A DNA stretch of 64,000 nt from Macrostomum lignano (lineage: Eukaryota). This document shows, one piece after another, positions 3,512 through 58,429 of the stretch. Where the stretch lies: NCBI GenBank assembly GCA_002269645.1, contig NIVC01001425.1:52666-116665 (forward strand), given 5' to 3'. The translations under genes and the position numbers were made by a program. How positions within the stretch are numbered: position 1 is the stretch's first letter; each line of letters begins with the position of its first letter. The notes under the pieces were generated by a model. The model saw only the letters and a list, made by a program, of their open reading frames with translations. It was not told the origin of the DNA and did no database searches.

Positions 3512-3554
<43 letters not shown>

Positions 3555-3603
3555 CAGAGACAGACAGAGACAGATTGAGGGACAGACAGACAGACAGATA
3601 GAA

Positions 3604-3655
<52 letters not shown>

Positions 3656-3897
3656 CAGAGACAGATTGACGGACAGACAGACAGACAGACAGATAGAAAA
3701 ACAGACAGACCGGCAGACAGACAGACAGAGACAGATTGACGGACAGACAGACAGACAGACAGATAGACAGGCAGACAGACAGACAGAGACAGATTGACGG
3801 ACAGACAGACAGACAGACAGATAGAAAAACAGACAGACCGGCAGACAGACAGACAGAGACAGATTGAAGGACAGACACAGGCAGACCAGACAGACAC
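3500..3897. repeat. (GACA)n compound microsatellite
   Basis: Long agac runs with interruptions. Confidence 0.95.
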
Positions 3898-15600: not shown

Positions 15601-16399
15601 CCTAGAGGACGACTCCTGCCAGCCGCCCGTCTGCGACGAATGCCTCGACTCAGCGGCCGATGCCGCATCAGCAGGCGACGCCGGCGACGCGGCCGGTGGG
15701 GAAGTTGGCGACGCTGGCGCCGGATTTAAAATGACAATCTACGTGAGGGTAGCCGAGGATGCCCGGGGATCTGTGCGGCCCGGCGGGTACGCCGCTAGCA
15801 CGCGTTCGAGCGCCGGCAGGAAGCGAGCGGCCACCTCGGCGGCTTCGACCGATCAGTCGGCCACCGCGGATGCCGCCGCTGACGAGGGCGGCGTCGGCAA
15901 TGGTATTAAGTCACCGCCGACGAAGTGCGCCAAATCTGCTCAGCAGCAACCGCAGCCATGGAGGTCGTCCAGAATTCGTCGCAAGCCAACCGACAAACGA
16001 TTCGACATCGATTCGGAAGCCACTGTGCAAGATTTAAAGCTGCGACTCATGGAAGCCTACGGTGTCGCTCCGTACGATCAGCACCTGCTGGTTGACGGTC
16101 GCGAGCTCGAGCCGGCTAAGGCTCAGCTGCGCCATCTCGGCCTGGGCCCCGGCTCCGTTGTTGACGCCGCTTTCGACCTGCCGCCGGGCTCTGAAGATGC
16201 CGCAGCCGTTACCGGCGCCGGCTTGTCGCTAAGGCGCGGCGGCGGCAACGATTCAACGTTAACAGAGGCGGCATCGGCAACTGGGCCGAATGAAATTGAG
16301 ATCGGCTTTAGCGGCACTCGACTGTTCGAGGCGGCGCCGCCGGCTGCCGCTGCTCCGGTGGCAGTGGCCGCTGAAGCCCAGGAGACTCTCGAAAGCTAG
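6618..16399 (+). CDS. USP48: Ubiquitin-specific protease 48; exons 6618-7315, 8907-9285, 10082-10537, 11400-11828, 12658-12856, 14994-16399 (~1188 aa)
   Basis: N-terminal WSWTESVEP...CRGNCRQNPCCL, Cys box GLTNYGNTCYLNS, His box GGHYVA...NDS, repeated CPHG (DUSP-like) motifs, WVGVKSLRSW, FNEDLLCQHG and a C-terminal ubiquitin-like domain (TVQDLKLRLMEAYGVAPYDQHL). All five GT-AG introns are phase-compatible. Confidence 0.92.
7365..8050. repeat. 33-bp minisatellite (cctgtctaaatctgccagagaatctaccccaca), USP48 intron 1
   Basis: Tandem copies; accounts for spurious ORFs 7588-8091. Confidence 0.95.
8060..8817. repeat. 31-bp minisatellite (ccagaccgtttttaatctgccacagaaacta), USP48 intron 1
   Basis: About 24 tandem copies. 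Confidence 0.95.
9318..10020. repeat. 30-bp minisatellite (tgttaatcctgtctgtagattatggtgggg), USP48 intron 2
   Basis: Tandem copies with degenerate ends. Confidence 0.95.
10780..11210. repeat. 22-bp minisatellite (tgagcagtttcagcttctctca), USP48 intron 3
   Basis: About 19 copies plus degenerate flanks. Confidence 0.95.
11881..12520. repeat. 37-bp minisatellite (gagattagcaacagcagctcacctgaagaccatgttt), USP48 intron 4
   Basis: About 16 near-perfect copies. Confidence 0.95.
13132..14570. repeat. 86-bp tandem repeat, USP48 intron 5, with a diverged inverted solo copy at ~14860-14906
   Basis: About 17 near-identical copies; the ORF track shows identical 62-aa ORFs every 86 bp. Confidence 0.97.
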
Positions 16400-16540: not shown

Positions 16541-18605
16541 TAGTTTAGAGAATTTCCCACCGGAAGTGAGTGTACAGTTTCATAATCTACCTTAAGAGGG
16601 GTACTCGTAGGTTTAGAGAATTTCCCACCGGAAGTGAGTGTACAGTTTCATAATATACCGGAAGAGGGGTACTCGTAGGTTTAGAGAATTGCCAACCGGA
16701 AGTGAGTGTACAGTTTCATAATCTACCTTAAGAGGGGTACTCGTAGGTTTAGAGAATTGCCAACCGGAAGTGGGTGTACAGTTTCATAATCTACCTTAAG
16801 AGGGGTACTCGTAGGTTTAGAGAATTGCCAACCGGAAGTGGGTGTACAGTTTCATAATCTACCTTAAGAGGGGTACTTGTAGGTTTAGAGAATTGCCAAC
16901 CGGAAGTGAGTGTACAGTTTCATAATCTACCTTAAGAGGGGTACTCGAAGGTTTAGAGAATTGCCAACCGGAAGTGGGTGTACAGTTTCATAATCTACCT
17001 TAAGAGGGGTACTCGTAGGTTTAGAGAATTGCCAACCGGAAGTGAGTGTACAGTTTCATAATCTACCTTAAGAGGGGTACTTGTAGGTTTAGAGAATTGC
17101 CAACCGGAAGTGAGTGTACAGTTTCATAATCTACCTTAAGAGGGGTACTCGTAGGTTTAGAGAATTTCCCACCGGAAGTGAGTGTACAGTTTCATAATAT
17201 ACCGGAAGAGGGGTACTCGTAGGTTTAGAGAATTGCCAACCGGAAGTGAGTGTACAGTTTCATAATCTACCTTAAGAGGGGTACTCGTAGGTTTAGAGAA
17301 TTGCCAACCGGAAGTGGGTGTACAGTTTCATAATCTACCTTAAGAGGGGTACTCGTAGGTTTAGAGAATTGCCAACCGGAAGTGGGTGTACAGTTTCATA
17401 ATCTACCTTAAGAGGGGTACTCGTAGGTTTAGAGAATTGCCAACCGGAAGTGGGTGTACAGTTTCATAATCTACCTTAAGAGGGGTACTCGTAGGTTTAG
17501 AGAATTGCCAACCGGAAGTGGGTGTACAGTTTCATAATCTACCTTAAGAGGGGTACTCGTAGGTTTAGAGAATTGCCAACCGGAAGTGGGTGTACAGTTT
17601 CATAATATACCGGAAGAGGGGTACTCGTAGGTTTAGAGAATTGCCAACCGGAAGTGAGTGTACAGTTTCATAATCTACCTTAAGAGGGGTACTCGTAGGT
17701 TTAGAGAATTGCCAACCGGAAGTGGGTGTACAGTTTCATAATCTACCTTAAGAGGGGTACTCGTAGGTTTAGAGAATTGCCAACCGGAAGTGGGTGTACA
17801 GTTTCATAATCTACCTTAAGAGGGGTACTCGTAGGTTTAGAGAATTGCCAACCGGAAGTGGGTGTACAGTTTCATAATCTACCTTAAGAGGGGTACTCGT
17901 AGGTTTAGAGAATTGCCAACCGGAAGTGGGTGTACAGTTTCATAATCTACCTTAAGAGGGGTACTCGTAGGTTTAGAGAATTGCCAACCGGAAGTGGGTG
18001 TACAGTTTCATAATCTACCTTAAGAGGGGTACTCGTAGGTTTAGAGAATTGCCAACCGGAAGTGGGTGTACAGTTTCATAATCTACCTTAAGAGGGGTAC
18101 TCGTAGGTTTAGAGAATTGCCAACCGGAAGTGGGTGTACAGTTTCATAATATACCGGAAGAGGGGTACTCGTAGGTTTAGAGAATTGCCAACCGGAAGTG
18201 AGTGTACAGTTTCATAATCTACCTTAAGAGGGGTACTCGTAGGTTTAGAGAATTGCCAACCGGAAGTGGGTGTACAGTTTCATAATCTACCTTAAGAGGG
18301 GTACTCGTAGGTTTAGAGAATTGCCAACCGGAAGTGGGTGTACAGTTTCATAATCTACCTTAAGAGGGGTACTCGTAGGTTTAGAGAATTGCCAACCGGA
18401 AGTGGGTGTACAGTTTCATAATCTACCTTAAGAGGGGTACTCGTAGGTTTAGAGAATTGCCAACCGGAAGTGGGTGTACAGTTTCATAATCTACCTTAAG
18501 AGGGGTACTCGTAGGTTTAGAGAATTGCCAACCGGAAGTGGGTGTACAGTTTCATATTCTACCGGAAGTGAGTACTCTTAGGTTCAAAAGAATTGCCAAC
18601 CGGAA
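16541..18605. repeat. 68-bp tandem repeat downstream of USP48
   Basis: About 30 copies of gtaggtttagagaattgccaaccggaagtgggtgtacagtttcataatctaccttaagaggggtactc. Confidence 0.97.
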
Positions 18606-25377: not shown

Positions 25378-25728
25378 TGCTTGTCTGTCTCTCTGACTGT
25401 CTGTCTGACGGTCTGTCTTTCTGTCTGTGTGTCTGTCTGACTGTCTGTGTCCGTCTGTGTCTGTCTGTCTGTCTCTGTCTGTCTGTGTGTCTGTCTGACT
25501 GTCTGTGTCTGTCTGTCTGTCTGTCCTACTGTCTGTCCGTCTGTCTGTCTGTCTGTGTGTCTCTTTGTCTGTCTGTCCGTCTCTGTCTGTCTGTCTTAGT
25601 ATCTCTCTGTGTCTGTCTATCCGCCTGTCTGTCTCTCTGACTGTCCGTCTGACAGTCTGTCTTTCTGTCTGTTGTGTCTGACTGACTGTCTGTTTGTCTG
25701 TCCTATTGTCTCTGTTTGTCTGTCCTAA

Positions 25729-25761
<33 letters not shown>

Positions 25762-25804
25762 GACTATCTGTGTCCGTCTGTGTCTGTCTGTTTGTCTGTC
25801 CTAA

Positions 25805-25848
<44 letters not shown>

Positions 25849-25852
25849 CTAA

Positions 25853-25884
<32 letters not shown>

Positions 25885-25888
25885 CTAA

Positions 25889-25921
<33 letters not shown>

Positions 25922-26075
25922 TAGTGTCTCTTTGTCTGTCTGTCTGTCCGTCTCTCTGTCTGTCTGTCCGCCTGTCTGTTTGTCTCTCTGTCTGTCTCTC
26001 TGTCTTTCTTAGTGTCTGTCCGTCTATCTGTCTTTTTGTCTGTCTGTCTGTCCGTCCGTCTGACTGCCTTTCTGT
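25378..26075. repeat. (CTGT)n compound microsatellite
   Basis: Reverse-complement type of the GACA array at 3500. Confidence 0.95.
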
Positions 26076-26344: not shown

Positions 26345-28159
26345 ATGTCTTCCGACAGCGGCACTGTTCTATTTTCGCTGCTAATCTCCGGCAAGGAGGC
26401 TGAAATATTGGCCCGATTGTCGGCGGCTCCGTCAACTCCAGAGGATCTTCGCCGGCTTGACAACCACGGCAACACCGCGCTGCACTATGCGGCCGCCGGA
26501 GGCTGTACCGCCGCAATCAACGAACTGATTGAACGGCACGGGCTTGACCCGGATGCCGTTAATCTGCTTGGCTGGAGTCCGTTTCTTGTCGCCTGCCGTC
26601 TGGGCCATCTGGCCGCGGCGCGTGTCCTGGCACGCCGGGCGGACACCCGCCGGGTCACCGTCTATGGCGCCGATGGATTCACGTTGGCCGCTGCTGGCAA
26701 TCACGTCAGGCTGATGGAGTTCCTGGCCGGGCTGGCCCTGGCCACCGAGTGTGGAAGCGATGGAGGCGTTAATAGAGACGGAAGCGGAGGTGTGGATAGA
26801 GGCGGAAGCGGAGGTGTGGATAGAGACGGCAGCGGAGGTGTGGATAGAGACGGCAGCGGAGGTGTGGATAGAGACGGCAGCGGAGGTGTGGATAGAGACG
26901 GAAGCGGAGGTGTGGATAGAGACGGAAGCGGAGGTGTGGATAGAGGCGGAAGCGGAGGTGTGGCTAGAGACGGCAGCGGAGGTGTGGATAGAGACGGCAG
27001 CGGAGGTGTGGATAGAGACGGCAGCGGAGGTGTGGATAGAGACGGCAGCGGAGGTGTGGATAGAGACGGAAGCGGAGGTGTGGCTAGAGACGAAAGCTAC
27101 AAAGGCGCAAAGTTTGCGGTCGAAGAATCCGACGGCGGTTTTCGAGTCGCTCGCCAACTCGGCGCGCCGCTCTGTCCGGCTGCATTTCGCGGCGCCATGG
27201 GCTCGATGCGCTACCTGCTGGCGCGCGGCTTTCCGTTTGACGGTGCCGGCGACAGCGCGGCGACTTCGCCATTGCACGCGGCTGCCGCGGGTGGTTGCGC
27301 CGAGGCGTGCAGCCTGGTGATTGAACAGGCCGGAGCTTCGGGCTCCCGACGCGACATCAACGGGCTGACGCCGCGCCAGGTAGCCAGACTGTTGGGCCAC
27401 TGCAAGCTGGCGAGGCTGCTTCCAGCCGGCAGCGACGGCGAGGAAGACTCGGACAGCGAGACGGAGACTCGGACAGAAGCATCAAGGCCTCTCCAACCAG
27501 CAGCAGCCGGAGAACTTGAAGACTGCACGAAGCAACAACAGCAGCTGAGCACTGAGCTCCGCCCCAGGCGCAAAAGCGACCTGCTTCTCTCTTGCTGTCG
27601 CTCACCGCCAGGCCCTTCGCCGCCGCCACCGCCACCACGGCCGCCACCGCCACTCGAAGTGGCCTCCAGCAAAAAGACAGTCCGCTTCTCTTGCATGGCC
27701 AACCAATTCGCAGATCGCTGGCGCGACACGCTTGGCAATCCCGGCTACGCTGAATCTCATTGGATTGGCGCCGAACGTCTAGTTCAAGCGGCGCCGGATT
27801 GGCGCGAGGCGCTATCAAAAGTGCACCAGATGTTGGCGCGTTTGCCCCAGACAGAGTCGCTGTCTGTAGCTGGGAGTCAAGCCAAACTGTTCGCTCCCAG
27901 TTTCCTAGTCCGGCCTGGCAATGGGATTTGCAATCCTCTGTTCCGATTTACAACCGCAGACGACGACAAACTGGCTTTGTTGCTAGGCAAATTCGGATTG
28001 TCCGCTTATCTGCCCACTCTGCGCGAGCAGGAGATCGATGCCGACGCATTCCTGTTGCTAACGGAAGACGACCTGATTGGCATGGGCGTGAATGACCCAA
28101 CTGAGCGGGAGCGAATGTTGAAAGCCATCGCTGAGATTAGACTCGATAGTTGCATTTAG
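26345..28159 (+). CDS. Ankyrin-repeat plus C-terminal SAM domain protein (ANKS3/ANKS6-like), 604-aa ORF with an in-frame 24-bp repeat
   Basis: GNTALHYAA, GWSPFLVAC and TSPLHAAA ankyrin motifs; SAM domain LGKFGLSAYLPTLREQEIDADAFLLLTEDDL. Confidence 0.85.
   Translation: MSSDSGTVLFSLLISGKEAEILARLSAAPSTPEDLRRLDNHGNTALHYAAAGGCTAAINELIERHGLDPDAVNLLGWSPFLVACRLGHLAAARVLARRADTRRVTVYGADGFTLAAAGNHVRLMEFLAGLALATECGSDGGVNRDGSGGVDRGGSGGVDRDGSGGVDRDGSGGVDRDGSGGVDRDGSGGVDRDGSGGVDRGGSGGVARDGSGGVDRDGSGGVDRDGSGGVDRDGSGGVDRDGSGGVARDESYKGAKFAVEESDGGFRVARQLGAPLCPAAFRGAMGSMRYLLARGFPFDGAGDSAATSPLHAAAAGGCAEACSLVIEQAGASGSRRDINGLTPRQVARLLGHCKLARLLPAGSDGEEDSDSETETRTEASRPLQPAAAGELEDCTKQQQQLSTELRPRRKSDLLLSCCRSPPGPSPPPPPPRPPPPLEVASSKKTVRFSCMANQFADRWRDTLGNPGYAESHWIGAERLVQAAPDWREALSKVHQMLARLPQTESLSVAGSQAKLFAPSFLVRPGNGICNPLFRFTTADDDKLALLLGKFGLSAYLPTLREQEIDADAFLLLTEDDLIGMGVNDPTERERMLKAIAEIRLDSCI
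26771..27092 (+). repeat. 24-bp tandem repeat, read in frame as (DRDGSGGV)x13
   Basis: gatagagacggcagcggaggtgtg units inside the ANK-SAM ORF. Confidence 0.95.
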
Positions 28160-28249: not shown

Positions 28250-30055
28250 AGTTTGCGTCCAAGCTTGTGTCCTCACCGATTTTCAAAGCTTGTGTCCTCA
28301 CCGGTTATCTAAGCTTGTGTCCTCACCGATTTTCAAAGCTTGTGTCCTCACCGGTTATCTAAGCTTGTGTCCTCACCGGTTAGCTAAGCTTGTGTCCTCA
28401 CCGATTTTCAAAGCTTGTGTCCTCACCGGTTATCTAAGCTTGTGTCCTCACCGATTTTCAAAGCTTGTGTCCTCACCGGTTATCTAAGCTTGTGTCCTCA
28501 CCAGTTAGCTAAGCTTGTGTCTTCACCGGTTATCTAAGCTTGTGTCCTCACCAGTTATCTAAGCTTGTGTCCTCACCAGTTATCTTAGCTTGTGTCCTCA
28601 CCAGTTAGCTAAGCTTGTGTCCTCACCAGTTATCTAAGCTTGTGTCCTCACCAGTTAGCTAAGCTTGTGTCCTCACCAGTTAGCTAAGCTTGTGTCCTCA
28701 CCGGTTAACTAAGCTTGTGTCCTTACCGGTTAACTAAGCTTGTGTCCTTACCAGTTATCTAAGCTTGTGTCCTCACCAGTTAGCTAAGCTTGTGTCCTCA
28801 CCGATTTTCAAAGCTTGTGTCCTCACCGGTTATCTAAGCTTGTGTCCTCACCGGTTAGCTAAGCTTGTGTCCTCACCGGTTATCTAAGCTTGTGTCCTCA
28901 CCGGTTATCTAAGCTTGTGTCCTCACCGGTTATCTAAGCTTTTGTCCTCACCGGTTATCTAAGCTTGTGTCCTCACCGGTTATCTAAGCTTGTGTCCTCA
29001 CCGGTTATCTAAGCTTTTGTCCTCACCGGTTATCTAAGCTTGTGTCCTCACCGGTTTTCAAAGCTTGTGTTCTCACCGATTTTCAAAGCTTGTGTCCTCA
29101 CCGGTTATCTAAGCTTGTGTCCTCACCGGTTATCTAAGCTTGTGTCCTCACCGGTTATCTAAGCTTGTGTCCTCACCGGTTATCTAAGCTTTTGTCCTCA
29201 CCGGTTATCTAAGCTTGTGTCCTCACCGGTTTTCAAAGCTTGTGTTCTCACCGATTTTCAAAGCTTGTGTCCTCACTGGTTAGCTAAGCTTGTGTCCTCA
29301 CCGGTTAGCTAAGCTTGTGTCCTCACCGGTTAGCTAAGCTTGTGTCCTCACCGGTTATCTAAGCTTGTGTCCTCACCGGTTATCTAAGCTTGTGTCCTCA
29401 CCGGTTATCTAAGCTTTTGTCCTCACCGGTTATCTAAGCTTGTGTCCTCACCGGTTTTCAAAGCTTGTGTTCTCACCGATTTTCAAAGCTTGTGTCCTCA
29501 CCGGTTATCTAAGCTTGTGTCCTCACCGGTTATCTAAGCTTGTGTCCTCACCGGTTATCTAAGCTTGTGTCCTCACCGGTTATCTAAGCTTTTGTCCTCA
29601 CCAGTTATCTAAGCTTGTGTCCTCACCGATTTTCAAAGCTTGTGTCCTCACCGGTTATCTAAGCTTGTGTCCTCACCGGTTATCTAAGCTTGTGTCCTCA
29701 CCGGTTATCTAAGCTTGTGTCCTCACCGGTTATCTAAGCTTTTGTCCTCACCGGTTATCTAAGCTTGTGTCCTCACCGGTTTTCAAAGCTTGTGTTCTCA
29801 CCGATTTTCAAAGCTTGTGTCCTCACTGGTTAGCTAAGCTTGTGTCCTCACCGGTTAGCTAAGCTTGTGTCCTCACCGGTTAGCTAAGCTTGTGTCCTCA
29901 CCGGTTATCTAAGCTTGTGTCCTCACCAGTTAGCTAAGCTTGTGTCCTCACCGGTTATCTAAGCTTGTGTCCTCACCAGTTAGCTAAGCTTGTGTCCTCA
30001 CCGGTTATCTAAGCTTGTGTCCTCACCAGTTATCTAAGCTTGTGTCCTTACCAGC
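28250..30055. repeat. 25-bp minisatellite (aagcttgtgtcctcaccggttatct) with higher-order structure
   Basis: About 70 copies with recurring variant blocks. Confidence 0.97.
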
Positions 30056-38374: not shown

Positions 38375-40383
38375 ATGGCTACGAGTAGTCCGGATTCAAT
38401 CAGCCACGTGGCAGACGGTTTGTCAGAGACAGCTACAGCAAAGTCTTCGAACATTTCCGACAGCAAAGCATCGCCGTCCGCTTCTTCTGTCGGCAACAAG
38501 AAGAAACCTCAAAGCTCGGCTAATGCCAAGTTGGATCGAATTGAAGCTGGAATTAATCAGATTATTCACCAACTGGCTGGAAAAGCAGCGTCGTAAGTGC
38601 TGTTTGTCGGTCACTTTCCATTTGGCCAAGTGAAAAACTCCCGTTACTTTCTCTGTCTAGCCACAGATACACTAACTAGAATAACTAAATGGCCCACTCA
38701 GCACATTTGCGTGTAAGCTACTTTCAGTTCAGTAGTAAGTTAAACTGAAGCATTTTAATGTATTTTTAAAGCCAATGCTCATTTATTGACTCCTCCCCCC
38801 AGCTTAAACCCTCCCCCGCCATAGGGGGCCGTAGCCCAGCGGTAGCGCAGCTGCTCTGGTGTGCCAGCGACCCAGGCTCGATTCCAAGTGCAGCCACATT
38901 AATTTGGGGCTGAATTGGAATTTCGGCTTGGCTCGCCTGTGCAATTAACGGCCTTGAGAGCCAACCCCCCAAGGCGCAGTGAAATGTACATGCCTAACAA
39001 TTGATAAAGTTAGGGCCGCTGTACACTCCTGTGTGAGTGTGTGTCTGCGTAACGTATCCGCGCGCTTGTATGCCTGCTCAGGGGAGTCGGCGGAATGGGC
39101 AGTAATGCCTCTCGCCGGTTGTGTGCCTATGTCGCCTAAAGTGCGCCAGGGTGCACACAACCCCCTGCCTCTAATAAAATAAAAAAACCCTGCCCCTCCC
39201 CACCCCAATTTTTATTGCCTTTCTCGGAATTCCAGCCTAAAGCTGCCATGTACATTTCATTGAACTGGCCAATCTACATTATTGGTGAACCAATTAGCAA
39301 GTTGTTTACGCCTGCAAGCTTGGGCTTCTAAACTTATCAAAGTCATTTCAGCTGCCTTTATTTTATAAAATCGCTTTTGTATTCTTCTTTGCTACTGAAC
39401 TGAAAGTAGAAAGCTGTTTTGCTAAGTTATGCCAGTTCAGAGTGGCCTATCTAGTTATTTTAGTATCCGTGACGGCACAGAGTTCAGCAACGTGGGAAAG
39501 TATCACCAACCAGTAGCTGGGTCACCAATAGCACTGTTCAATCTTTGTGCCGCTGGACAGCTGAATAAATGTACATCGGGGCTAGCCACGAGATTGCATC
39601 AGCTTAATGAATAATGACCGGGCTCTAAAAAGATCACTTACTGCTGGCAAACTATGAGCATAAGAATAGCAAAAAACTGTGATCGCAAAACTTACCCCTC
39701 TTAGATCCATCGATGCAAAGGCAGGCCCACAGGCCGAAAGCCCCGACACTTCAACTAACTGGAGGCGCCTGGCGGAGGAGCTGCAGGAGACGATCGATTC
39801 CCTGGCAGCTCGTCTTGAGACCCAGGCGGCCCAGCTAGAGTCTGTCCAAGAAGAAGCGCAGCGCCAGCGAGAGACGGCCGAGGCGGAGAATCGCGACCTG
39901 CGGCGTCGGCTGCTCAGCTTTCGACGCCAACTGGACGCGAGCCAGACGGCGCGTGCGCGTCTCAGCGCCGATTTGTCAAAAGTGCAAGCTGAATTGGCCG
40001 AGCTGAAACAATCTGCAGCAGGTGCTGGGGCAGCTGGAAACAGCGACATGGAGGAGACTGTTGAGGCTCTGACCGCCCAGTTGGATCGCAGCAACGAACA
40101 GCTGGAACAAGTTCTGTTGACCCGTTCGTGCAGCTGCGATCAGCGCCTGCACGACTGCTGCCGTCGGGAGGGCGGGCTGGACTCTCAGTTCCGGTCGAAG
40201 CGGAGCTACGAAACTGTCCGAACAAGCGGCGGTCGCTATGGCGGCAGCGAGGACGGCACAGCCCACGGGCCGCAACAAGCAGCACAGGCTTCAGCCGCAG
40301 CTGATCGCAAGTCGAAAATTCGGTCTCCAAACAAGTCCTCGACAAAACGTGACGTAAAATCGAAGGAAGGCAAACAGAAGTGA
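38375..40383 (+). CDS. Uncharacterised coiled-coil protein, exons 38375-38592 and 39705-40383 (~298 aa)
   Basis: A phase-2 tc|gtaagt...ctcttag intron joins the ORFs; long E/Q/L/R heptad region. Confidence 0.75.
38824..39187 (+). mobile_element. Full-length tRNA-derived SINE in an intron
   Basis: gggggccgtagcccagcggtagcgc (A box), ggctcgattcc (B box), a body shared with three other copies and an A-rich tail (taataaaataaaaaaaa). Confidence 0.8.
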
Positions 40384-40915
40384 AAAAATGAGACCTCAAT
40401 TGCAATATCTTGAAGGTCGTTTGATAATAAATATAATGCTAATCAAACGAGTCAATACTTGAACTACTAGCGAAACTTTGCTTCATATTCAAACATGCAG
40501 TATATTTTTTGTATTACAAAGTTATAGCATGACTGTAAGTTTCTAAATGATAACCCATACACAATGGCACAGTCTGGGTGCAAAAATCCGCGCACTAAAT
40601 ATTTTCCCAACCAGTAATTCAGTATTCTCAGCTGCTGAGCTTCCTCTGTCAGCAGCCTGTTTTTTCACGAAAACTGGATTCAACAGGGAGGATCTGCATC
40701 AGCTGACGCGGCAGTCTCAACTGGCCTCAACAATTTCGCAGTAAACTGACCGATGATTGTGTCGCAAATAAATAATTGTTTCCATGCCGCATCCAGCTAA
40801 ACAGGGTTGGTTGCAGGCATCCCGGAAACTTTCCCAAGCTTATCAAGCAGAGTCTGGAATTGCCAACATCCTGCAATTAGCGGCCGGATAAATAAGGCCA
40901 GTCATCAAATTGAGT

Positions 40916-43900
40916 ATGCTCAGCGAAACTCAGCGAAGCGCTGCGAATAGTATTCCCAAGCTAAGATCCTATCGAGCGAAGCATTCGTCGTTCAACATCG
41001 AAATGGCTCGTCATCACAGCGGTGGCAACCCAGCCATTTCAGTAGCAGAGCCGGCAACCACAACAGCCGGTACAGAAGGCAGCACCAGCAACTGGGAGAG
41101 CCGTCTTGGCTCTGCCTTGTCTCGCACCAAGGAGCGCTTCTTTAAGATTTCTCCGTTCGGCGACCGTCTGACAGCGGCACTGGCTGCTGGCAATCTTTCC
41201 GAAGTTAAGGCTATACTTTGCGAGAACCCCGAGCTGCTCAATGAAGAGCTGGCGAACAACTTGCGACCGCTGGCTTTCGCCTACAAGCTGCGCAACAAGG
41301 CTCTGTTCAGCTTGCTTCTCCAACGCGGCGCCAGCCTCAGCTGTCTGTTCTACAATGACGGCGTGCCGCTGATCAGCGCTGTGTACACCGACGGTGAATC
41401 CTGGTACCAAGAAGCTCTGATGGCGCGGTCGTGCGCTTTGGATTTGCAAGATACAAACACTGGCAACACTGTCGTCCATCTAAGTGTAGAGCGCCACGAT
41501 TCAGACTTTTTCAAGATTCTAGCAAAGCGAGGCGCAAAGTTAAACTTGCGGAATAAGCGCGGCCTGGTTCCGCTGCATCTGGCGCTTAACAACGAGGATA
41601 TCCGGCTAGTGGTGAACTTGCTGGAATCGGGCGTAGATCCAAACATACCCTATCCAAATGGTGACTACTGCTTGCACCGCTGCTGTTCCATCAAGGACAC
41701 AAAATTTCTCACCATCTTTCTGTACTACCGAGCCCGGCCAGACGCTCGTGACAGGCTCGGCTGCTTGCCGCTGCACCGCGCCGCTATGGAGGAGCGCCGG
41801 GAGCTCATCGACTGCCTTCTGCAGTTCACAAATGCCAACGCATCCGATCCGAATGGTCGGACCTGTCTGCACATCCTGGCTATCAATGGAAACATGGAGC
41901 TGCTTACCTACATGGTCGACCGCGGCGCCAGGTTGGAGCTCTGCGACAAATCCGGTGTGACACCAATCGACCTTCTGTTGCTCAACAACAACCAGCAATT
42001 GGTGCGGGAACTGTGTCTCTATTTTGCTAAACAGGTTTCATCGGACTCCCGACCTATCGCTCTGCTCATTCCCAAGTATCACGAGCTGCTGCTGGTTCTT
42101 AAAACAATTAGCCGGTCTAACAGCCTGTGCAAGAGAAGTGAACTGGCCTGGGACTGTATGACAGGCTGCGGAGGTCAGCAGCTGCAGCCGGAACAGCTCG
42201 ACGACGAAGCAGAAGCTGCAGTTCTACGTGCCCTTCTGACCGCTGTCAATTTGGATACGGACGATCTCAGACAGTGCTTGCTACGGTTCCATCGGCGCCT
42301 TCACAACCGCTCAGATGAGGCCGGCTTGCAACAGCTAACAGGCGCTGTGGTGAAGTTCGGTCTTTACCGCGACGATCTCGGCATTGTTAATTGCGTCACT
42401 GAGTGCGGCAGCATCTGGCAGAGGATGCTGGCGCTTATCGAAGAAAACATTGCAGAGCTGTACATCCAGTGTCCAACTCGATGCTCTACAACTTTCATAC
42501 CATTCATCAAGGAGCAGTTTGTCTACGATGGGCAAGTAATGTTCGACAAAATGAACAATTGGTTGCGCGAGTTAACTATGGTGAATCTAGCGCATGGAAG
42601 CAAGGACAAATATCAGCTGCTGAAGGATCCGCTGCGCTCGCTTGTCGTTTGGTCCATTCTGATGGAGAAGTTTCAGCTTACAGAGCTGCTACTCCGCATG
42701 GAAACAACGGATATCATTCCACTGGGACTGTTTGCGGTAGTCCTCTTGCGTGGATTGTTGAAAAACACGCGTCTTAACGTGACACAGGAGCAACCGTTCC
42801 TGCAGTGCGCCAGCCGGTGTGAAAGCGTCGTAATTGATGCTCTGACCGTCAGCAGCAACATGGACACGTCGCCAAGGAGTGCCGTAACGCTGCGCTTCAT
42901 CCGCGAAGGTCTTCCTAGGTATGGTGGCTTTTCTTGCATTGATCTGGCGGCCATCGGTGAGTCAGAGCGCTTTATGCAGCTTCCTGTTTGTCAGACGGCC
43001 CTGGACCTCGACTGGTACCTTTCAACCTACCAGTTTCGTCGATCCAAGAAACTTCTGTTGTTCTTTGCTGGCATGACGCCATTTTTTATTACGCTGCCAT
43101 TTTTCTTCAACTATACTCGAAATATTCGAAAACGCAGTCTCGGCAACAAATCTTATAGCATAAGGACTTTTGAGTCCGGTTTTAAGCGTACCGGCAAAAC
43201 ATCCATATTTCGCGGTCGAAACGCTGATGCTGCTGCTGCCGCCACTGGAGGTGCGGCCTCTAGCGGAGTCGGGGCAGCTTCTGTCAGCAGCGATGGTATC
43301 GGCTCAAAGACTGTCGACCATCATCCCGATGACAATGCTTGTAACAATGATCTCGCAACTCTAATCATTCCCAACAAGGTGCGGAATCCTTGTTTGTATT
43401 ATTTTTCTTTGATCCGAGACTTCTACGGAATACCATCGACAAAGTTCTGGTATCACACAGTCTTCAACGTTGCCTTCCTACTTCTTCTTAGTCGCATCGT
43501 TCTGTTCGACGTTGAGGAACGCTGCTCGTTGTGGGAGTACGTTCTGTACATCTTTCTTTTCGGCTACTTCCTGGAAGAGGTTCGCGAATTTCTGATCAGC
43601 CTGCGCAGCAAAAGTCTTCATCACTACTTCACCAGTAAGTGGAATATGCTGGATATGGCGTCACTGGGCTCGGCAACAGTTGGACTGGTCATCAGATGGG
43701 TGACCCACCTTTATTGCTGCTTCGGCTATTCATCAGCAGACTCAGACCATCATCATCAGCACAATCTGTGCAGCTGCTCCGCAACTCAAGTTACCCAGAT
43801 GGTGCACACAAACTTGTACTACACGCGAATCATGTACTGTGTTGCTCTGCTGGCTTTCTATATGCGGATGCTGTACGTGCTGTCTGTTTTGGAGAGCCTC

Positions 43901-44976
43901 GGACCGCAGCTGAAAATGATATCTAAAATGGTGCTGCAAGATCTGATTCCTTTCCTGTCCATTGTACTGGTGTTTATGGCGGGTTTCGGCGTCACGTTTC
44001 AAGCCCTGCTGTATCCACCCTTCTCCAGCAACGGGACTGACGCGTCGCACCAGTCCGCTAGTTCGATGGATGTAAGTAAAAAAGATCTAGGCTTTGTTAA
44101 ATTCGTACTTCAAAAACAATAAAATATAATAACGATGTTTGTCTACTCAACTTGCAGGTTATGGAGAACATGCTTCGGTTCACATTCTACACCATGCTGG
44201 GCGAGTACTCCAATGAGAACATAATGGGCAAAAATCATTGCGGTAAAGAGAACTGCCCGGCTCCGCACAAAATTGGAAAGGTTGTAGTGCCGGACTTCTT
44301 TCTCATCGTGTACATCATCATCACCAATGTGCTGCTGCTGAACCTGTTAATCGCCCTGTTTAGCAAGACAGTGGACGAAATCCACAATAAATCCCGCGCC
44401 CTCTGGCAGTTCGAGCGCTACGACCTGGTGGCCGAGTTCAAGGCTCGCTCTCCGTTTCCTCCCCCATTGAATGTGCTGGACATTCCTCTGCTGCTCTGCA
44501 AGACAATCTTCAACAGTTGCAATCGTTGCCTGGTTCAGCGCGTTCAGCCGCGCTCTAGTCCAAAGAACTGCTTGTACTTTTTTATTTACCAAATCTTCGC
44601 GCTCAAGGGTCGTCAGGCAGAGCTCGGTCGAGGCGGCAGCGGCGATCGGGCCGGTGCAGTCAATGCGACAGCATTCGGCGACGTGCTCGAAGCCCTAAGC
44701 GAGTTGCGCCAGCGGCTGGACCGCATCGAGGCTCACCTGTGCAGCGGGCACGCCGACTCAGCAGCCGTCTCGGCCTCCGCTGCAGTCACCGCCGCCGCCG
44801 CCGCCACTGCCGCTGTCTCGTCGTCGCTAGCAAAACCGACGGCATGGTCGACGGGCGATTCGCTGAAAACGTCGGAGACGGAGTCCAGACAAAGTCGCCA
44901 GGCCGCTGCGTCGACAATGGATAAAATTGTGGGAAGGTGCAAATCCGCTGTGTTGCACGTCTCAGATGAGGCGTGA
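40916..44976 (+). CDS. TRPM-type cation channel with N-terminal ankyrin repeats; exons 40916-44071 and 44158-44976 (~1324 aa)
   Basis: About 8-9 ankyrin repeats (GNTVVHLS, GLVPLHLA, GCLPLHRA, GRTCLHIL), MHR4-like LVVWSILM...SCIDLA...CQTALDLDW, FYGIPSTKFW, six TM helices, pore FGVTFQALLYP and TRP domain LWQFERY...PFPPPLNVL. Phase-0 gat|gtaagt intron. Confidence 0.88.
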
Positions 44977-45973: not shown

Positions 45974-48004
45974 ATGTCGCTGAAGCTGTTCGAGCAGTTC
46001 CTGCAGACGGAGATCGCCCGGCGCCCCGGCCTTGCCAACGCGCTGAAGTGGAAGGGCGGCCTGCGGCTGTGCAGCCAGCTGTTTGACGAGGCCGTTGCCG
46101 ACCTTCACTACCGCCTCATCCGCCGGGCCGTCCAGCTGCTTTTCAGCCGCGCCAATGCGGCCCGGCTGCGCGAGCTCGCCTGCGACACCAGCGGCGCCCA
46201 AGGCGGATTCGGCGACGGCGCAGTCGGCAGCAGCTGCGAGACGAAGTACGCCAGCTCGGAGTCTTCGCGGACGGCGACGCCTGGCCGAAGTCGCGGCACC
46301 AGTCGGAGCGGCGACGCCGGCGTTGAGAACTTCGACGCGCGCTGGGACGGCCAGTCAAACAACTCGCAGTGAGTTCGCTGTGCGCACCTGTGGAGTGCCT
46401 GCGAGAGGGTGGAGAGCAGTCAAAAGTATCGTCAGAGACTATCGCAAGTGTGAACGCACTGATATCAAAGTTTGCACAGCTAATGCCATTAGTAATGGCT
46501 CCAAGGACATAGCAAAATATTTTTGAAGTTTAAAATCTGTAATTCCCACTCGAAATCCCACTTTTTGTACCATCTTTTTTCAAAGAGCCGCCCATTCTCC
46601 CGACTCAACCACAAAAGGGGACTCAGGCAGACGCCGCGATCGACTGCTCGGCACGGAGGCGGACTCGGTTGCTGTGGCAACGGCGCCAGCTGCGGTGGAA
46701 CTACTGGCAACAACAGCCGGTGGCCAAGAGCTGGCGATGTCAGGCAGACACCGCAGCAGCAGTGGCAGCCTCAGCAGCAGCCTCAACAGCAGCATCAGTG
46801 CCAGCAGCCGCAGCAGCCGCAGTTTTGCCAGCAGCAGCCTCGGCAGCCGCCAGTGCCTGAGCGCAGAGCTGCCGTCTGCAGCGGCCCGGTGCCCCAGCCA
46901 TGCAAGCCGCCAACGCCGCTACGGCCGCAGGCTGCAGGGCAGCAGGCCGCAAAGGTTCGCGAAGGACCGGCGTACAATTACCCCTCAGCTGGCAGTCACA
47001 ACCGGCAGGCCATGGCCGGCTGGTACGTGGCCAACATGGACGCCCTGCTCAGCAATCTGATGCGCCTATTTGAGAAGATCTACGCCGACACGTTGAGCAT
47101 GTGCGGCGCCAGCCCCAGCGCAGTGAAGGAGCTGCGCAACGCCCTGCCGGACCCAACTCTGCTCAGCATGCAGCAGCGGGCAGGCGGTGCGTGGCGGCCG
47201 AATTACATGACCTGCAAGATCGACTTCGTGCTGCACATGGCTGCCATGGTGTATCGCAACACGCAGGACCTCCGCTGTGGCTGCCGCTGCCCGGAGCCAG
47301 CAGATCCCTGCCCCGCCTTGGGCGATCAGCCGCGGCAGACTGTCCAGCAGCAGCAGCAGCAGCTCGACTGTCTGCAGCAGGCAGCTCTGACGCGGCACAG
47401 TGGCGTGCAGCACACGGTAAACCGGAACAACGCCGCTGCGGCCGCGGTGGTCACCGCAGACGAGTTGGAAGACGACAACAGAGGCGACACTGGCGACACC
47501 GGCGACTGGCGGAGCCCTCGCCTTGCGGGCCAGGCCTCGGGGGCGCTTCAGGAAGACAGCTCGTGGGAGCGGCCCCCTGTCCTGAATGCGAACGGCAGCA
47601 GCAGTGCTGGAAGGCGGTTGCAGGGAGGTCGGCCGACGCAAAAGACTCGCAGATCGACAACGCCGCAGCCCCTGCAGCGACAAAAGCCGCAGCAGTCGGT
47701 GGAGACCAAGTACTTCGCCAGAGCGTTCGTCGACTCCAAAGACGCTCGAACTGGCAGCAGCGCCGTTTCGACGGCCCGAGTGCGGCCGAAGCGGCGCCAC
47801 CGCCGGAGCTGCCCGAAACAGCAGAAAAAGCTGCCGCTGCAGCCAGCCGTGCGGGTGCAGCGCACATTCAGGGTGTCGGAGGACAGTGGGTGCAGCGGCT
47901 CGGAGCGGACGCAGTCCACGTCACCGTCGTCCACCGGGAGCGACTCGTGCGGATCCGCTGCAGGTGGAACGCATTTTCGGTGCAGCATCGACGTGCCTCG
48001 GTAA
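45974..48004 (+). CDS. Uncharacterised Q/S-rich protein, exons 45974-46368 and 46627-48004 (~590 aa); start and end uncertain
   Basis: GC3-rich codons and a phase-2 ca|gtgagt...ctcag intron that keeps frame. A gtaag donor at 48001 suggests a possible further exon. Confidence 0.6.
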
Positions 48005-54322: not shown

Positions 54323-55648
54323 TCACATTCTGTACTTTGCAGCCGGCAGGATAACCATGCAGACGCAGACATTAGTCAGTGTTAGCCCGATGTACAAGGC
54401 CATGAAGAAACAGTCTTGTCTCTGCGGTTCTCGTCGTCTGGCCGACTGTGGCGGCCGGCGAGGCTTCCTATTGATGTGCTCGAGTTCGAGTCCGCTCGCC
54501 GCACTGCCGCCAGCCGGCGTCTCGAATTCCATGCCGCCTGGCGTCGGCGTCGCCAAAGGAGCCGGCCGTCGAACGCGCTTCTCTTTTACTTTGGTCAGCA
54601 GGCCGTTGGCGTCCTCGGTGTAGTATATGACTGGGCCAGCGCCGCCCGCCCCACTGAGGTTGCTGCGAATGGCCAAGAAAGTGAACATGATGAGCAGAGC
54701 CATTTGTATCATGATGTAGATGCCCAACAATGGAATCGTCTGCATCGACTTGGGCGCGCTTGAGCTCGTGATCATCACGTACAGTGTCATGGTGAGCAGT
54801 ATTGCGATCGACATGCTCACTCGGTCGCCAGCTTCGTCAGCCAAAAACATGAGACAGGCCATGAAGGACAGCATGAAGAATGGCACAACAATGACAAATA
54901 TGTAGTAGTATGGTTTACGTCTGACTTCGATCTTCACTTCGAAGTAGTCCCACATTTGATTGACGTTATCGTCGAAAAAGTTTTTTTCCTCGATGCTGAA
55001 ACTTATTATCTCCCATTCGCTGACGAACTTGGATATGTTGGCCATGCGGATGTTGCTCTTGGGCAGGTGGATGCGGTAGCTACCGCGGTAGCTGGTCCAA
55101 GGACCGAACTGAAAATCGCACTTCTGCGAATCGAATGGGAAGAACATGACGTCTATTGGGCAGGCTACAGTGGTTACCAGGTGATAATAAATATACACTG
55201 TGCCATTCGGATACACCAGAGCCTCTACTGCTTTGAGTAGGCGAAAGTCGAATTGGTTCTCCTTCTTAGTGTTGCTCAAGCCCACGTCCGGTATCCAGAT
55301 GTTGTCGGCAGGGACCTTGATCACTTTGAGGCCGCCATACTCGGTTGAGTTCCACTCCAGACGGGGATCACGCCACAGAAAGGCCGTCCAGACGCCGATT
55401 TCAAGAATCTCATTCTGGTCCAAGCCGTAAAAGTGCAGTATTTGGAAGCTCATGTTTACCTGGGATCGGTTGCTGCCAATCTCCGGGTAAACGTAGCGGC
55501 CGTTGGAACCAAAGTTCTGCAACAGACGAGTGATCAACGCCGTCACTTTTGCTTCCATCAGGAAGCCGGATGAGTTCGATGGGCTTCCCGTCACTATGGA
55601 GACGATGATGAGGATTAAGCCGACAACTGATTCGGCTTGGAGCTTCAT
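54323..55648 (-). CDS. Intronless Cys-loop ligand-gated ion channel subunit (nAChR-like, non-alpha), 441 aa from ATG 55648
   Basis: Hydrophobic signal peptide, WRDPRLEW, IWIPDV, Cys loop CPIDVMFFPFDSQKC, RRKPYYY, M1-M3 and a C-terminal M4. No vicinal CC in loop C. Confidence 0.92.
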   Translation of the reverse strand: MKLQAESVVGLILIIVSIVTGSPSNSSGFLMEAKVTALITRLLQNFGSNGRYVYPEIGSNRSQVNMSFQILHFYGLDQNEILEIGVWTAFLWRDPRLEWNSTEYGGLKVIKVPADNIWIPDVGLSNTKKENQFDFRLLKAVEALVYPNGTVYIYYHLVTTVACPIDVMFFPFDSQKCDFQFGPWTSYRGSYRIHLPKSNIRMANISKFVSEWEIISFSIEEKNFFDDNVNQMWDYFEVKIEVRRKPYYYIFVIVVPFFMLSFMACLMFLADEAGDRVSMSIAILLTMTLYVMITSSSAPKSMQTIPLLGIYIMIQMALLIMFTFLAIRSNLSGAGGAGPVIYYTEDANGLLTKVKEKRVRRPAPLATPTPGGMEFETPAGGSAASGLELEHINRKPRRPPQSARRREPQRQDCFFMALYIGLTLTNVCVCMVILPAAKYRM

Positions 55649-58429
55649 TCTATCCGTCCTGCTACTTGAGCAATCTAACAGCAAGTTCTCGGTAATCTCC
55701 TGTATTTTTAATTTGCAAGTCTGGCTGAGTCAATCAAGATTAGGCTGGCGAGAATGGGAGACGCCGAATCGGCCTAGCGGAAGGGTACCGATTCGAATTA
55801 ATTAATTATCTGCTGTGCCTGCTGGAGTGTTCTTGGCTGACTACAGGGAGAACCTAGCTTGGGGAACTACCAGATCGGGAGCCTGTCGACCCCCAGAGGA
55901 ATCGGACGAATTCGAACAAAACAGTGAAGTATATTGGGAAGAAGACAAGTAAAAGTTGTCTGAGATTTTGAAGACTGATCGCTAGACCGCATCGGCGGAA
56001 ATAGGCCAGGGTTGGAACTTTTGTCCAGTTCAGGCCTGGGGTGTCGGCGACTCCCCAGCCTTCTCACCGTGCCTCTGAAGCTTCTCATTCGCCACTATTC
56101 CGTTCGGCCGCACCTCGACTAGTTCACGCTACTTGCAGCCAATCCCCTTTCTGAACGGGCCGCGCACTGCGAAACTTTAGGGGTAGATAAAAAAATCGAT
56201 CCCAAGGGATCATTCAACGCTGCGAGATCGGGATGGGTTCCGCCTCAGCTCGTTGCTTCGGGCACAATGCCAGTAGCCTGCCAGGAGCCGAAATCTTCTC
56301 TTCGGAAAGCTGAGTCCCGAGTTATACTCTTCCTTATCTGTCGATGGTGTTAAAAGCGACGTAGATTGACCCTCCGTTCCACTTTGCTGGCCTGTCATGG
56401 GAGAAATCCATTATGGTGGCCGCACTAATCCCGTGGATAACACAAAGCCCCCGCCGCCCAGAGCCTTGAGGGATGGTGGTTGCTGGACGGAGAGCTACTA
56501 ACTGGAAGGGATGGATGCGGTAGGCTGATCGAAATGCTGCTGATGGTGCTCGGGTTCGTAACCAAGGATACTAGTTTCGATATATGAATCACAAAGGATA
56601 TTTGCTGATCGGACAAACAGCTTTTAGCTACATCCTGCCAGGTTCCTCATGCTTTGTTGTTTTGATCTCTAAAGCCTTCCGATTTATGGAATTGAACCCG
56701 ATGAATTCGATCAACGGATTTTCCTGTAAAACAATAATTGATTGCTTGATAAATCTTTTCTGTTTTCGCCGTTTTACAAATCTTTCCGAGTGTGTGGCCT
56801 TCTATCTCTAAGCTTATACTCGTAAATGGTCCCTCGCTATCTCTATCGATATATTGATATTTTTCTGTGACTTGATTAGCTTTTGATGATGGTGAATCGT
56901 CTGTTTTCATAGATGTTCCTCATTTCATCGTCACGTGATAAGTTTATAGCAATTCAACATTCAGTTTTACATACGATCATAAAAATAAACTTGGCAATCG
57001 AGCAGACACAAATGCAAATTATTTTTGCAAATTATTTTGCGTGGCTTGGTGAAGCTCAAAAATCTGGGAAGTTCGTCTCGATACAATGCAAATGGAAGCG
57101 AGCATATTGGTATTGAGATACCCTTGATGTCTCTGACTCAATTTAAAAAAAATTGTTTTAGCAAGGTTTATTACATGAGGAACAAAATAGCATGCTAAAT
57201 TTAGCTCGTAGATACTGTGTCAACGAAATTTGAACATGCAGGGATCTACTGCATCGCTTTCCAAAAAGGTCAGTTAAATTCGGGTGTTTTCTTACCTAAA
57301 CACGTCGCATTCGCGTCATATTCCCTATGAAATTACCTCTACATGCATCATTAGCTCATTTGGAAATATAATCATGACATGGTACGAAGTCCCAAGCCCA
57401 GCCAGTCGAGTCACAACGTTGTCTAGTCTGTCGAACTTCTGGCGACGTTGAAACATTTTTCTCTTAAAGTTCGATCCCATGATCGAGGCCCACAATCTGG
57501 ATTGTACCAGCGACGAAAAATCAAAGATTACTTCAAGACAATCTGTCTGGAATGAATCTGCCATTGATCTGAAATGCTGCTTCAGTTTTGCACAAATCTC
57601 TTATAGTCCGTAGAAGGTGCACGTGTCAACTTTCCCAACATAGGATTTGCAGCCTTGTTGATGGACTGGACTATCCGGCAAAACTCGGGATTCTGTATTC
57701 CCTAGCGGCATCCTGTTTCTAAGGCAATTTTGCTGCACTATTTCCTTGCAGTTGTCTTGCGATGTCCATCCAACTGTCTAATCAATGACAAGAGTTTTCA
57801 ATCAGTTTCTGGTCATAATGGCTACGACGTTTGGCGAAAGATTTATACATTAGAAAATAATCAGAGCATTATCTATAAGTTTTTTTGTAGTAGCTTAAAT
57901 TCTACATGTAAAGGAAATCTTGGTTATTTATAGTTTTCTCCACACAACCAGAAAACCTGTTGCTCTCGCGTGAGCAAGCTGCATCTATGCGAAGAAAAAC
58001 TTGTTGAATTGCCAGAGTACCACATCAGCCACGCGGCTTTCTCTGACCCTGAAGAACAAAACTGAATAACGGTAGGCAGCTAACACTGTTAGCATTGAGT
58101 GAGAGATGGATTAGCCTTGGGCTCCATTGCATTATTTATTAGGAGTACGAAGCAACACGCGGTCTACTTGTTTCCTTTAGTTTACTTGTAAGAAACTCTG
58201 CTCTGTGAGGATCAAGTGTGGTCAACTTTTTTGAGGTTTAGCATCGAGAATGAACAACAAATTCCACATCAAATCTGACTTGCTTTGGATCGACGAGTTA
58301 ATTTACTTGAAGGAAGATAACTATAAACTTGAAACTCACCTGAAATATTGCACTACACCTATCCACTCTACAGGTGATTTCATACATTCCAAAAATCAAA
58401 TGCGATAAAAGGCTTCTCTCTCTCCAAGT

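Follow-up and report, generated by a model that had tools for sequence, protein, structure and literature searches.

Within a 64,000-nucleotide stretch of Macrostomum lignano DNA (GCA_002269645.1, contig NIVC01001425.1, positions 52,666 to 116,665 of the forward strand; hereafter the window, to which all coordinates refer), an intact two-exon gene on the plus strand at 40916-44976 encodes, as read from its open reading frames (ORFs) and splice sites, a protein of 1324 amino acids (aa). The product is very probably a member of a flatworm clade of ankyrin-headed, TRPM-like channels, the prototype of which is TRPM_MCLZ of Schistosoma mansoni. The original prediction, drawn up from the DNA letters alone, had described an ankyrin-TRPM chimera, had placed it in a flatworm context and had left open whether such an architecture was known. 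The source organism is indeed a flatworm, and the recommended search in other flatworms found the architecture in trematodes and a cestode, where it is already described as TRPM_MCLZ. The replacement of SLOG by ankyrin repeats has hence been published before, and what the window gene adds is a new, free-living relative of the published channels rather than a channel of a new kind.

The ankyrin head and the TRPM-type channel

Two plus-strand ORFs, 40910-44122 and 44152-44976, are joined by splicing, giving a coding sequence of 40916-44071 plus 44158-44976. Coding exon 1 (aa 1-1052) runs from the N-terminal tail through the ankyrin repeats, a linker, MHR4, pre-S1 and S1-S5 to the start of the pore loop, while coding exon 2 (aa 1053-1324 and the stop codon) holds the pore helix, filter, S6, TRP helix and C-terminal tail. 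The intron between them (44072-44157) is 86 bp long and of phase 0, lies within the S5-pore loop and has GT-AG borders, with the donor gtaagt starting at 44072 and the acceptor ag at 44156-44157 (ttgcag). The first ATG is closely preceded by in-frame stops. Across 98% of its length the spliced product is 100% identical to the M. lignano hypothetical protein BOX15_Mlig007500g6 (P0001 in our sequence set, 1295 aa), including the residues on both sides of the junction; in its annotation the splice junction is the same and translation begins with the second Met (aa 30, ATG at 41003). Exon 1, of 3.2 kb, encodes ankyrin repeats, MHR4 and S1-S5 without any break in the reading frame, so the fusion of ankyrin repeats and channel is no gene-model artefact, as had been concluded from the DNA alone.

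The N-terminal part of the protein contains an ankyrin repeat domain (aa 83-378; 41162-42049), which is recognized by the Pfam models Ank_2 (82 bits), Ank (63-66 bits) and Ank_4 (57-59 bits). With a hidden Markov model (HMM) built from the protein itself, six strong 33-aa repeats of 29-55 bits each are seen at aa 182-378 (41459-42049). In the Protein Data Bank (PDB), this part matches ankyrin-1/2 (218 bits), NOMPC (147 bits) and TRPA1 (94 bits), over query aa ~100-430 only, and the alignments with ankyrin-1/2 and NOMPC carry the repeat region back to ~aa 100-113, adding two to three degenerate repeats. With the six strong repeats and these alignments, the predicted count of eight to nine is a fair one. 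Whether the repeats are ankyrins or rather MHR helices had been posed as a test of the chimera; the Ank and ankyrin-1/2 scores show them to be true, canonical ankyrin repeats.

A helical linker follows at aa 379-558 (42050-42589). It is specific to the family, is conserved among the Macrostomum paralogs (MHR scores 90-142) and resembles the C-terminal part of MHR3 only weakly, though in colinear order (hhalign probability 1-2% when taken alone). In a profile-profile comparison of N-terminal halves, the family versus 45 SLOG-bearing TRPMs, the search for MHR3 in the linker (aa 385-560) and the ankyrin domain gave colinear, non-significant alignments (probability 1-7.5%, with 7.5% for the ankyrin region). 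Homology to MHR4 is evident for aa 561-700 (probability 99.5%, E 4e-22), and the MHR4-like domain (aa 559-700; 42590-43015) matches PF25508, the 'TRPM2-like domain', with 29.5-29.7 bits (cutoff 27) in its C-terminal half, i.e. at profile positions 133-255 of 257 only. For LSDAT_euk/SLOG, NUDIX and alpha-kinase no Pfam match was obtained in the window protein even at E<=1, in agreement with the predicted loss of SLOG/MHR1-2 in favour of ankyrins and the predicted absence of NUDT9H and kinase. By domain order, about eight to nine canonical ankyrin repeats stand where TRPMs have SLOG/MHR1-2 and most of MHR3. The accompanying statement that canonical TRPMs lack ankyrins is roughly true, although MHR3 and MHR4 of ordinary TRPMs have been reported to contain degenerate ankyrin repeats (PMC13143021).

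The channel part is recognized by Ion_trans (57 bits). With the ankyrin part removed, the best 60 PDB matches are all TRPMs, from 122 to 69 bits, among them Nematostella TRPM2 (122 bits, 6co7), TRPM3 (113), TRPM1 (113), TRPM8 (94), TRPM2 (83), TRPM4 (82) and TRPM5/TRPM7 (70-77). The S1-S4 voltage-sensor-like domain was located at aa 844-991 (43445-43888) by alignment to TRPM structures and to the family; S2 reads E-E-x-x-E and S3 W-N-x-x-D, which include the Ca2+-site positions, and S4 reads R984-x-x-Y987. After an S4-S5 segment with the motif L-G-P-x-L-K-M, the pore domain (43934-44364, interrupted by the intron) consists of S5 (aa 1007-1033), the pore helix and filter with the sequence F-Y-T-M-L-G-E-Y (aa 1054-1074, filter L-G-E-Y) and S6 (aa 1094-1121). 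The TRP helix (aa 1124-1149; 44371-44448) carries the TRP box WQFERY at aa 1135-1140 (44404-44421) and is followed by a P-P-P motif. Further downstream, a short heptad-like helix at aa 1224-1246 (44671-44739) is a possible tetramerisation coiled coil, and the protein ends in an Ala/Ser-rich tail with no enzyme domain; after the TRP helix no Pfam domain, including TRPM_tetra, was matched. The TRPM-type MHR4, S1-S6, pore and WxFxRY box of the original prediction are thus all found, and by these motifs and matches the channel part is of the TRPM type, not of the TRPA/C/N type, with the features that define a TRPM-type tetrameric cation channel fold reading as intact.

Two low-complexity segments interrupt the channel part. 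One is an Ala/Gly/Ser-rich insertion in pre-S1 (aa 735-815; 43118-43360), the other a His/Cys-rich insert between S3 and S4 (aa 931-964; 43706-43807; sequence HLYCCFGYSSADSDHHHQHNLCSCSATQ...). The latter accounts for 21 additional residues between S1 and S4, which are 133 aa apart in the window protein versus 112 aa in Dicrocoelium. It may form a metal-binding extracellular loop or may be a mere low-complexity expansion.

The combination of domains sets the protein apart from other TRP families. With canonical TRPMs it shares MHR4, S1-S6, L-G-P-x-L, the G-E filter, the W-x-F-x-R-Y box, the P-P-P motif and the Ca2+-site residues of S2/S3; it differs from them by its canonical ankyrin repeats, by the absence of SLOG/MHR1-2, NUDT9H and kinase, and by an MHR3 that is not detected with confidence. 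TRPA1, TRPN/NOMPC, TRPC and TRPV likewise have a canonical ankyrin solenoid ahead of a six-transmembrane (TM) channel, but their TM domain, pre-S1 and TRP helix are of another type, and none of them is among the best 60 PDB matches. The layout is opposite in TRPS (soromelastatin; C. elegans ced-11 type), which is sister to the TRPM channels and has diverged from them: TRPS is reported to have kept SLOG and Nudix, and no ankyrin repeats were detected in it (PMC7306681), whereas the window protein has ankyrin repeats and neither SLOG nor Nudix. The same survey reported ankyrin repeats to be absent from both TRPM and TRPS; Platyhelminthes were not sampled (PMC7306681).

Flatworm relatives and the comparison with TRPM_MCLZ

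An exhaustive HMMER search of representative sequences with the ankyrin-free part as query yielded 1794 relatives. The top-scoring matches that were checked are ankyrin-bearing proteins, save one 196-aa fragment with 100% identity, and Pfam detected Ank and Ion_trans in nearly all top relatives and the C-terminal part of PF25508 in most. Word-index searches with the channel part alone and with a 9-sequence family profile each returned the window protein only, probably as low-complexity words had filled the candidate list, and with the full protein generic ankyrin proteins dominated. The relatives stem from many M. lignano loci and from Opisthorchis viverrini, O. felineus, Dicrocoelium dendriticum, Schistocephalus solidus and Fasciolopsis buski; several of those with ankyrins are labelled 'TRPM7' by their sources. 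The flatworm label of the clade is based on members with an identified source, a set outside which P0064, P0067/P0228, P0076, P0077, P0089 and P0090 fall.

Domains in 149 matches were classified by jackhmmer seeded with Pfam-verified segments, and neighbour-joining (NJ) trees were calculated for S1-TRP (286 columns, 141 tips) and for MHR4 plus S1-TRP (428 columns, 115 tips, 300 replicates). All 21 ankyrin-only tips and 5 fragments form one clade without any SLOG-bearing tip inside, with bootstrap values of 0.78 (S1-TRP) and 1.00 (MHR4+S1-TRP). Within this clade, a group that contains the parasite proteins stands apart from one formed by Macrostomum alone (15 tips; support 0.905 and 1.00 in the two trees), so that the relation to TRPM_MCLZ is many-to-one. 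M. lignano has ~13 clusters at 50% identity. In the TM domain the window protein is at most 45% identical to any paralog and ~35% identical to the parasite orthologs. As this low identity to paralogs goes together with its being the first to branch off within the 13-tip core of the Macrostomum group, the protein is an old, divergent paralog within a Macrostomum expansion, not a 1:1 ortholog of TRPM_MCLZ. No second channel copy or paralog is present elsewhere in the window.

Sm.TRPM_MCLZ (Smp_333650) is the target of meclonazepam; it is encoded by three exons, combines a long N-terminal domain of ankyrin-like repeats with six TM helices and a TRP helix, is permeable to Ca2+ and mediates its entry once a ligand in the S1-S4 cavity has opened the channel, and it had earlier been classed as TRPM7 (PMC10788528). 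A 2024 review described it as lacking MHR1/2 (SLOG), with ankyrin modules instead, a short C-terminus without enzyme domain and a poorly conserved pore (PMC11731825). In 2026, 63 orthologs with N-terminal ankyrin domains were reported from trematodes, monogeneans and cestodes, for which the name 'TRPM-like' was proposed; His831 in S1 is invariant among them, and the channel exon is duplicated as exons 3a and 3b (PMC12861061). The pocket mutant H946Y has a lowered sensitivity to meclonazepam, and the Fasciola channel, which bears Tyr, is insensitive (PMC12861061, PMC10788528). Homologs in free-living flatworms are not mentioned in the TRPM_MCLZ papers (PMC10788528, PMC11731825, PMC12861061).

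The parasite proteins among our relatives were identified as TRPM_MCLZ orthologs via features quoted in the main text of these papers. In two Opisthorchis viverrini models (P0058, P0214) the region from MHR4 to TRP occurs twice in one polypeptide, window aa 632-1185 being matched twice, which evidently means that the public annotation has translated the alternative exons 3a and 3b in succession. At the variable S4 position the cestode has Phe and the plagiorchiids have Tyr, as published; the S1 His...His, the S4 Arg and the TRP Tyr are conserved. The 112 residues from the S1 His to the S4 Arg in Dicrocoelium equal the spacing in Sm numbering (H831-R943). Together, the doubled channel domain, the S4 residues and this spacing identify the parasite proteins as TRPM_MCLZ orthologs.

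In agreement with an assignment to the same clade, TRPM_MCLZ and the window protein share ankyrin repeats in place of SLOG/MHR1-2, MHR4, TRPM-type S1-S6, a TRP helix, a short C-terminus lacking any enzyme domain and a small number of exons. They also share most residues of the S1-S4 pocket: of the seven published pocket residues, five are kept in the window protein (the equivalents of H827, Y864, E868, R943 and Y1117), while H831 in S1 corresponds to Asn851 and H946 in S4 to Tyr987. Other differences are found in and around the pore. The filter is L-G-E-Y, the canonical TRPM type, in the window protein versus F-E-V-S in the parasite orthologs, the TRP box WQFERY versus WLA(E/G)RY, and the Ca2+-site position in S2 is E in the window protein and the other Macrostomum copies versus Q in the parasite copies. 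The divergent filter and TRP box of the parasite channels fit the published remark on a poorly conserved pore (PMC11731825). An alignment of the pore region (window aa 1056-1080; 44167-44241) displays a hydrophobic residue followed by G-E/D-Y in the Macrostomum paralogs, and F-E-V-S or F-D-I-G in the trematode and cestode orthologs. The host differs as well, the window gene belonging to a free-living worm and TRPM_MCLZ to parasitic flatworms.

Several observations weigh against the assignment. The equivalent of the S1 residue His831 is Asn, and the gene is split into two coding exons, its intron separating S5 from the pore helix, versus three exons with the whole channel on the last in TRPM_MCLZ; of the strict TRPM_MCLZ features, the pocket residues H831/H946 and the three-exon structure are both missing. 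The TM identity to the parasite orthologs (~35%) is hardly above that to canonical TRPMs (26-37%). A TM-domain tree had been recommended as a check, and it does group the protein with the ankyrin-only TRPM-like clade, though with the moderate support of 0.78 and in an NJ set without non-TRPM outgroups, which limits the outcome. S. mansoni TRPM_MCLZ (Smp_333650) itself lies outside the sequence set, so the tie to it runs through the other parasite orthologs and the published residue patterns. A single-sequence AlphaFold2 model of aa 70-1235 reached a mean predicted local distance difference test score of 37.8 and a predicted template modelling score of 0.26 and was discarded. Finally, the selectivity and Ca2+ dependence proposed below are derived from a handful of residues and from known TRPM structures.

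As the M. lignano genome is recently duplicated and rich in repeats, the gene could be a decaying or silent duplicate that gives no working channel. The locus is embedded in minisatellite-rich DNA, the protein carries low-complexity inserts (Ala/Gly/Ser in pre-S1, His/Cys between S3 and S4, and the Ala/Ser tail), and with its low TM identity to every paralog it is the most divergent of its subgroup. Nevertheless, no stop breaks the 1324-codon frame, the intron is canonical, nearly all positions invariant in the family are kept (W-N-x-x-D, the S4 Arg, G-P-x-L-K-M, the filter G-E, the TRP W/R-Y and PPP), and the inserts sit in loops that are variable across the family, which makes decay improbable.

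A direct 1:1 Macrostomum ortholog of TRPM_MCLZ with the same, meclonazepam-gated pharmacology would explain the common architecture, the common clade and the five retained pocket residues. It is quite improbable, however, given the many-to-one relation of the Macrostomum-only group to the parasite group, the different pore motif and exon structure, the Asn at the H831 position and the Tyr in S4, which is the very change of the H946Y mutant and the residue of the insensitive Fasciola channel. Membership of TRPA, TRPN, TRPC or TRPV with a mere likeness to TRPM, for which the NOMPC and TRPA1 scores might speak, and an annotation artefact at the ankyrin-channel junction are both effectively excluded: these matches are confined to the repeats (query aa 113-358), the channel part matches TRPMs throughout its best 60 PDB entries and is preceded by MHR4 (PF25508), its TM domain reaches no more than 0.7 bits with the fish protein P0020, which is characterised here only by its Pfam domains Ank and Ion_trans, and repeats and S1-S5 lie in a single ORF.

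Proposed working and evolutionary meaning

As a member of the ankyrin-headed TRPM-like clade, the window protein would, we infer, tetramerise and conduct cations including Ca2+. The filter Glu is of the type seen in divalent-permeable TRPM1/3/6/7 and NvTRPM2, and since the L-G-E-Y filter carries this residue, a Ca2+-permeable, non-selective cation channel would be expected. Gating probably originates from the S1-S4 cavity and the TRP helix, as in TRPM8, TRPM_PZQ and TRPM_MCLZ; the cavity is the binding site of menthol in TRPM8 and of praziquantel in TRPM_PZQ. At the four S1-S4 positions through which TRPM2/4/5/8 and NvTRPM2 bind Ca2+, the window protein has E, E (for Q), N and D, and because they read in this way, intracellular Ca2+ is suggested as a co-factor or co-agonist. 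Gating by ADP-ribose is probably not to be expected, as both known ADP-ribose sites, in MHR1/2 and NUDT9H, are missing. The ankyrin solenoid would most likely serve as a platform for protein docking or scaffolding that replaces the nucleotide-sensing SLOG. With Tyr in S4 and Asn in S1, and with the H946Y mutant and the Tyr-bearing Fasciola channel as precedents, little or no sensitivity to meclonazepam is predicted, and the native ligand would be a different one.

The Macrostomum paralogs, too, keep the W-Q-F-E-R-Y box. As the canonical filter and this box are kept in Macrostomum and diverged in the parasites, the comparison suggests the ancestral state to be better reflected by the free-living copies than by the parasite copies. 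The presence of the ankyrin-headed design in free-living M. lignano dates the swap of SLOG for ankyrins, as judged by the sequences compared, to before parasitism. A more far-reaching scenario can be put forward only tentatively, at somewhat less than even chances: the ankyrin-TRPMs of Macrostomum would preserve the ancestral state of the TRPM_MCLZ lineage, the swap having taken place at or before the base of the rhabditophoran flatworms on a channel with canonical pore and Ca2+ site, with more than ten old, probably sensory paralogs for different ligands in the free-living worm and a single copy with diverged pore kept in the parasites. If this is correct, a TRP group of subfamily level has been missed by the large TRPM/TRPS surveys because Platyhelminthes were not sampled, and M. 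lignano would be a tractable laboratory model for an anthelmintic target class.

The ankyrin-headed design is not confined to parasites; it is greatly expanded in free-living M. lignano, whose copies keep the canonical filter and the Ca2+-site residues that are partly lost in the parasite copies. This adds to the TRPM/TRPS surveys, which put ankyrin repeats outside the TRPM lineage. Only one other TRPM drug target of flatworms besides TRPM_MCLZ has, to our knowledge, been de-orphanised, and the worm offers a safe, transgenic system amenable to RNA interference in which the role of the ankyrin head and the S1-S4 pocket can be addressed.

A second type of flatworm TRPM was encountered among the relatives, in which three to four ankyrin repeats precede an intact SLOG. 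It is represented by P0080/P0245/P0246 and P0241 from M. lignano, where Mlig003066 is one such model, P0119 from Clonorchis sinensis (KAG5447154; Ank_2 32.9 bits and LSDAT_euk 75.7 bits in Pfam) and P0248 from Opisthorchis viverrini, with layouts such as Ank at aa 95-205 and SLOG at 280-527, or Ank at 58-181 and SLOG at 293-519. In the trees these proteins fall among the canonical flatworm TRPMs and outside the ankyrin-only clade, and the node for a sister relation is a trifurcation. They may stem from wrongly fused gene models or constitute a real Ank-SLOG-TRPM class; those of Macrostomum and the opisthorchiids might represent an intermediate stage of the swap.

Surroundings of the gene

The 38 kb at the start of the window (1-38000) consist almost entirely of minisatellite arrays, listed in 33 rows by Tandem Repeats Finder. 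Their units are 15-86 bp long and repeated up to ~70 times, with 83-99% matches, for example at 16543-18605, 28261-30052, 13178-14575 and 1436-2799. Two long tracts of (GACA)n/(TGTC)n occur in addition, one spanning 3512-3896 and the other 25382-26075.

Near the channel gene, a coiled-coil-like ORF of 234 aa lies directly upstream on the plus strand (39679-40383), with sub-threshold golgin and filament matches only, and a Gln/Pro-rich ORF of 493 aa directly downstream on the same strand (46523-48004), in a stretch of 65% GC. A second ion-channel gene is found ~9 kb downstream of the TRPM-like gene on the opposite strand, where a 453-aa ORF (54323-55684, minus strand) encodes a subunit of a Cys-loop ligand-gated ion channel (Neur_chan_LBD 129.9 bits, Neur_chan_memb 31.6 bits). 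Further upstream, a plus-strand ORF of 604 aa (26345-28159) combines Ank_2 (60.7 bits) with a C-terminal SAM domain (38 bits), as in an ANKS-like protein, and is partly overlapped by a 24-bp tandem array at 26772-27097. Another plus-strand ORF, of 403 aa (15188-16399), contains a ubiquitin-like domain (26.5 bits).

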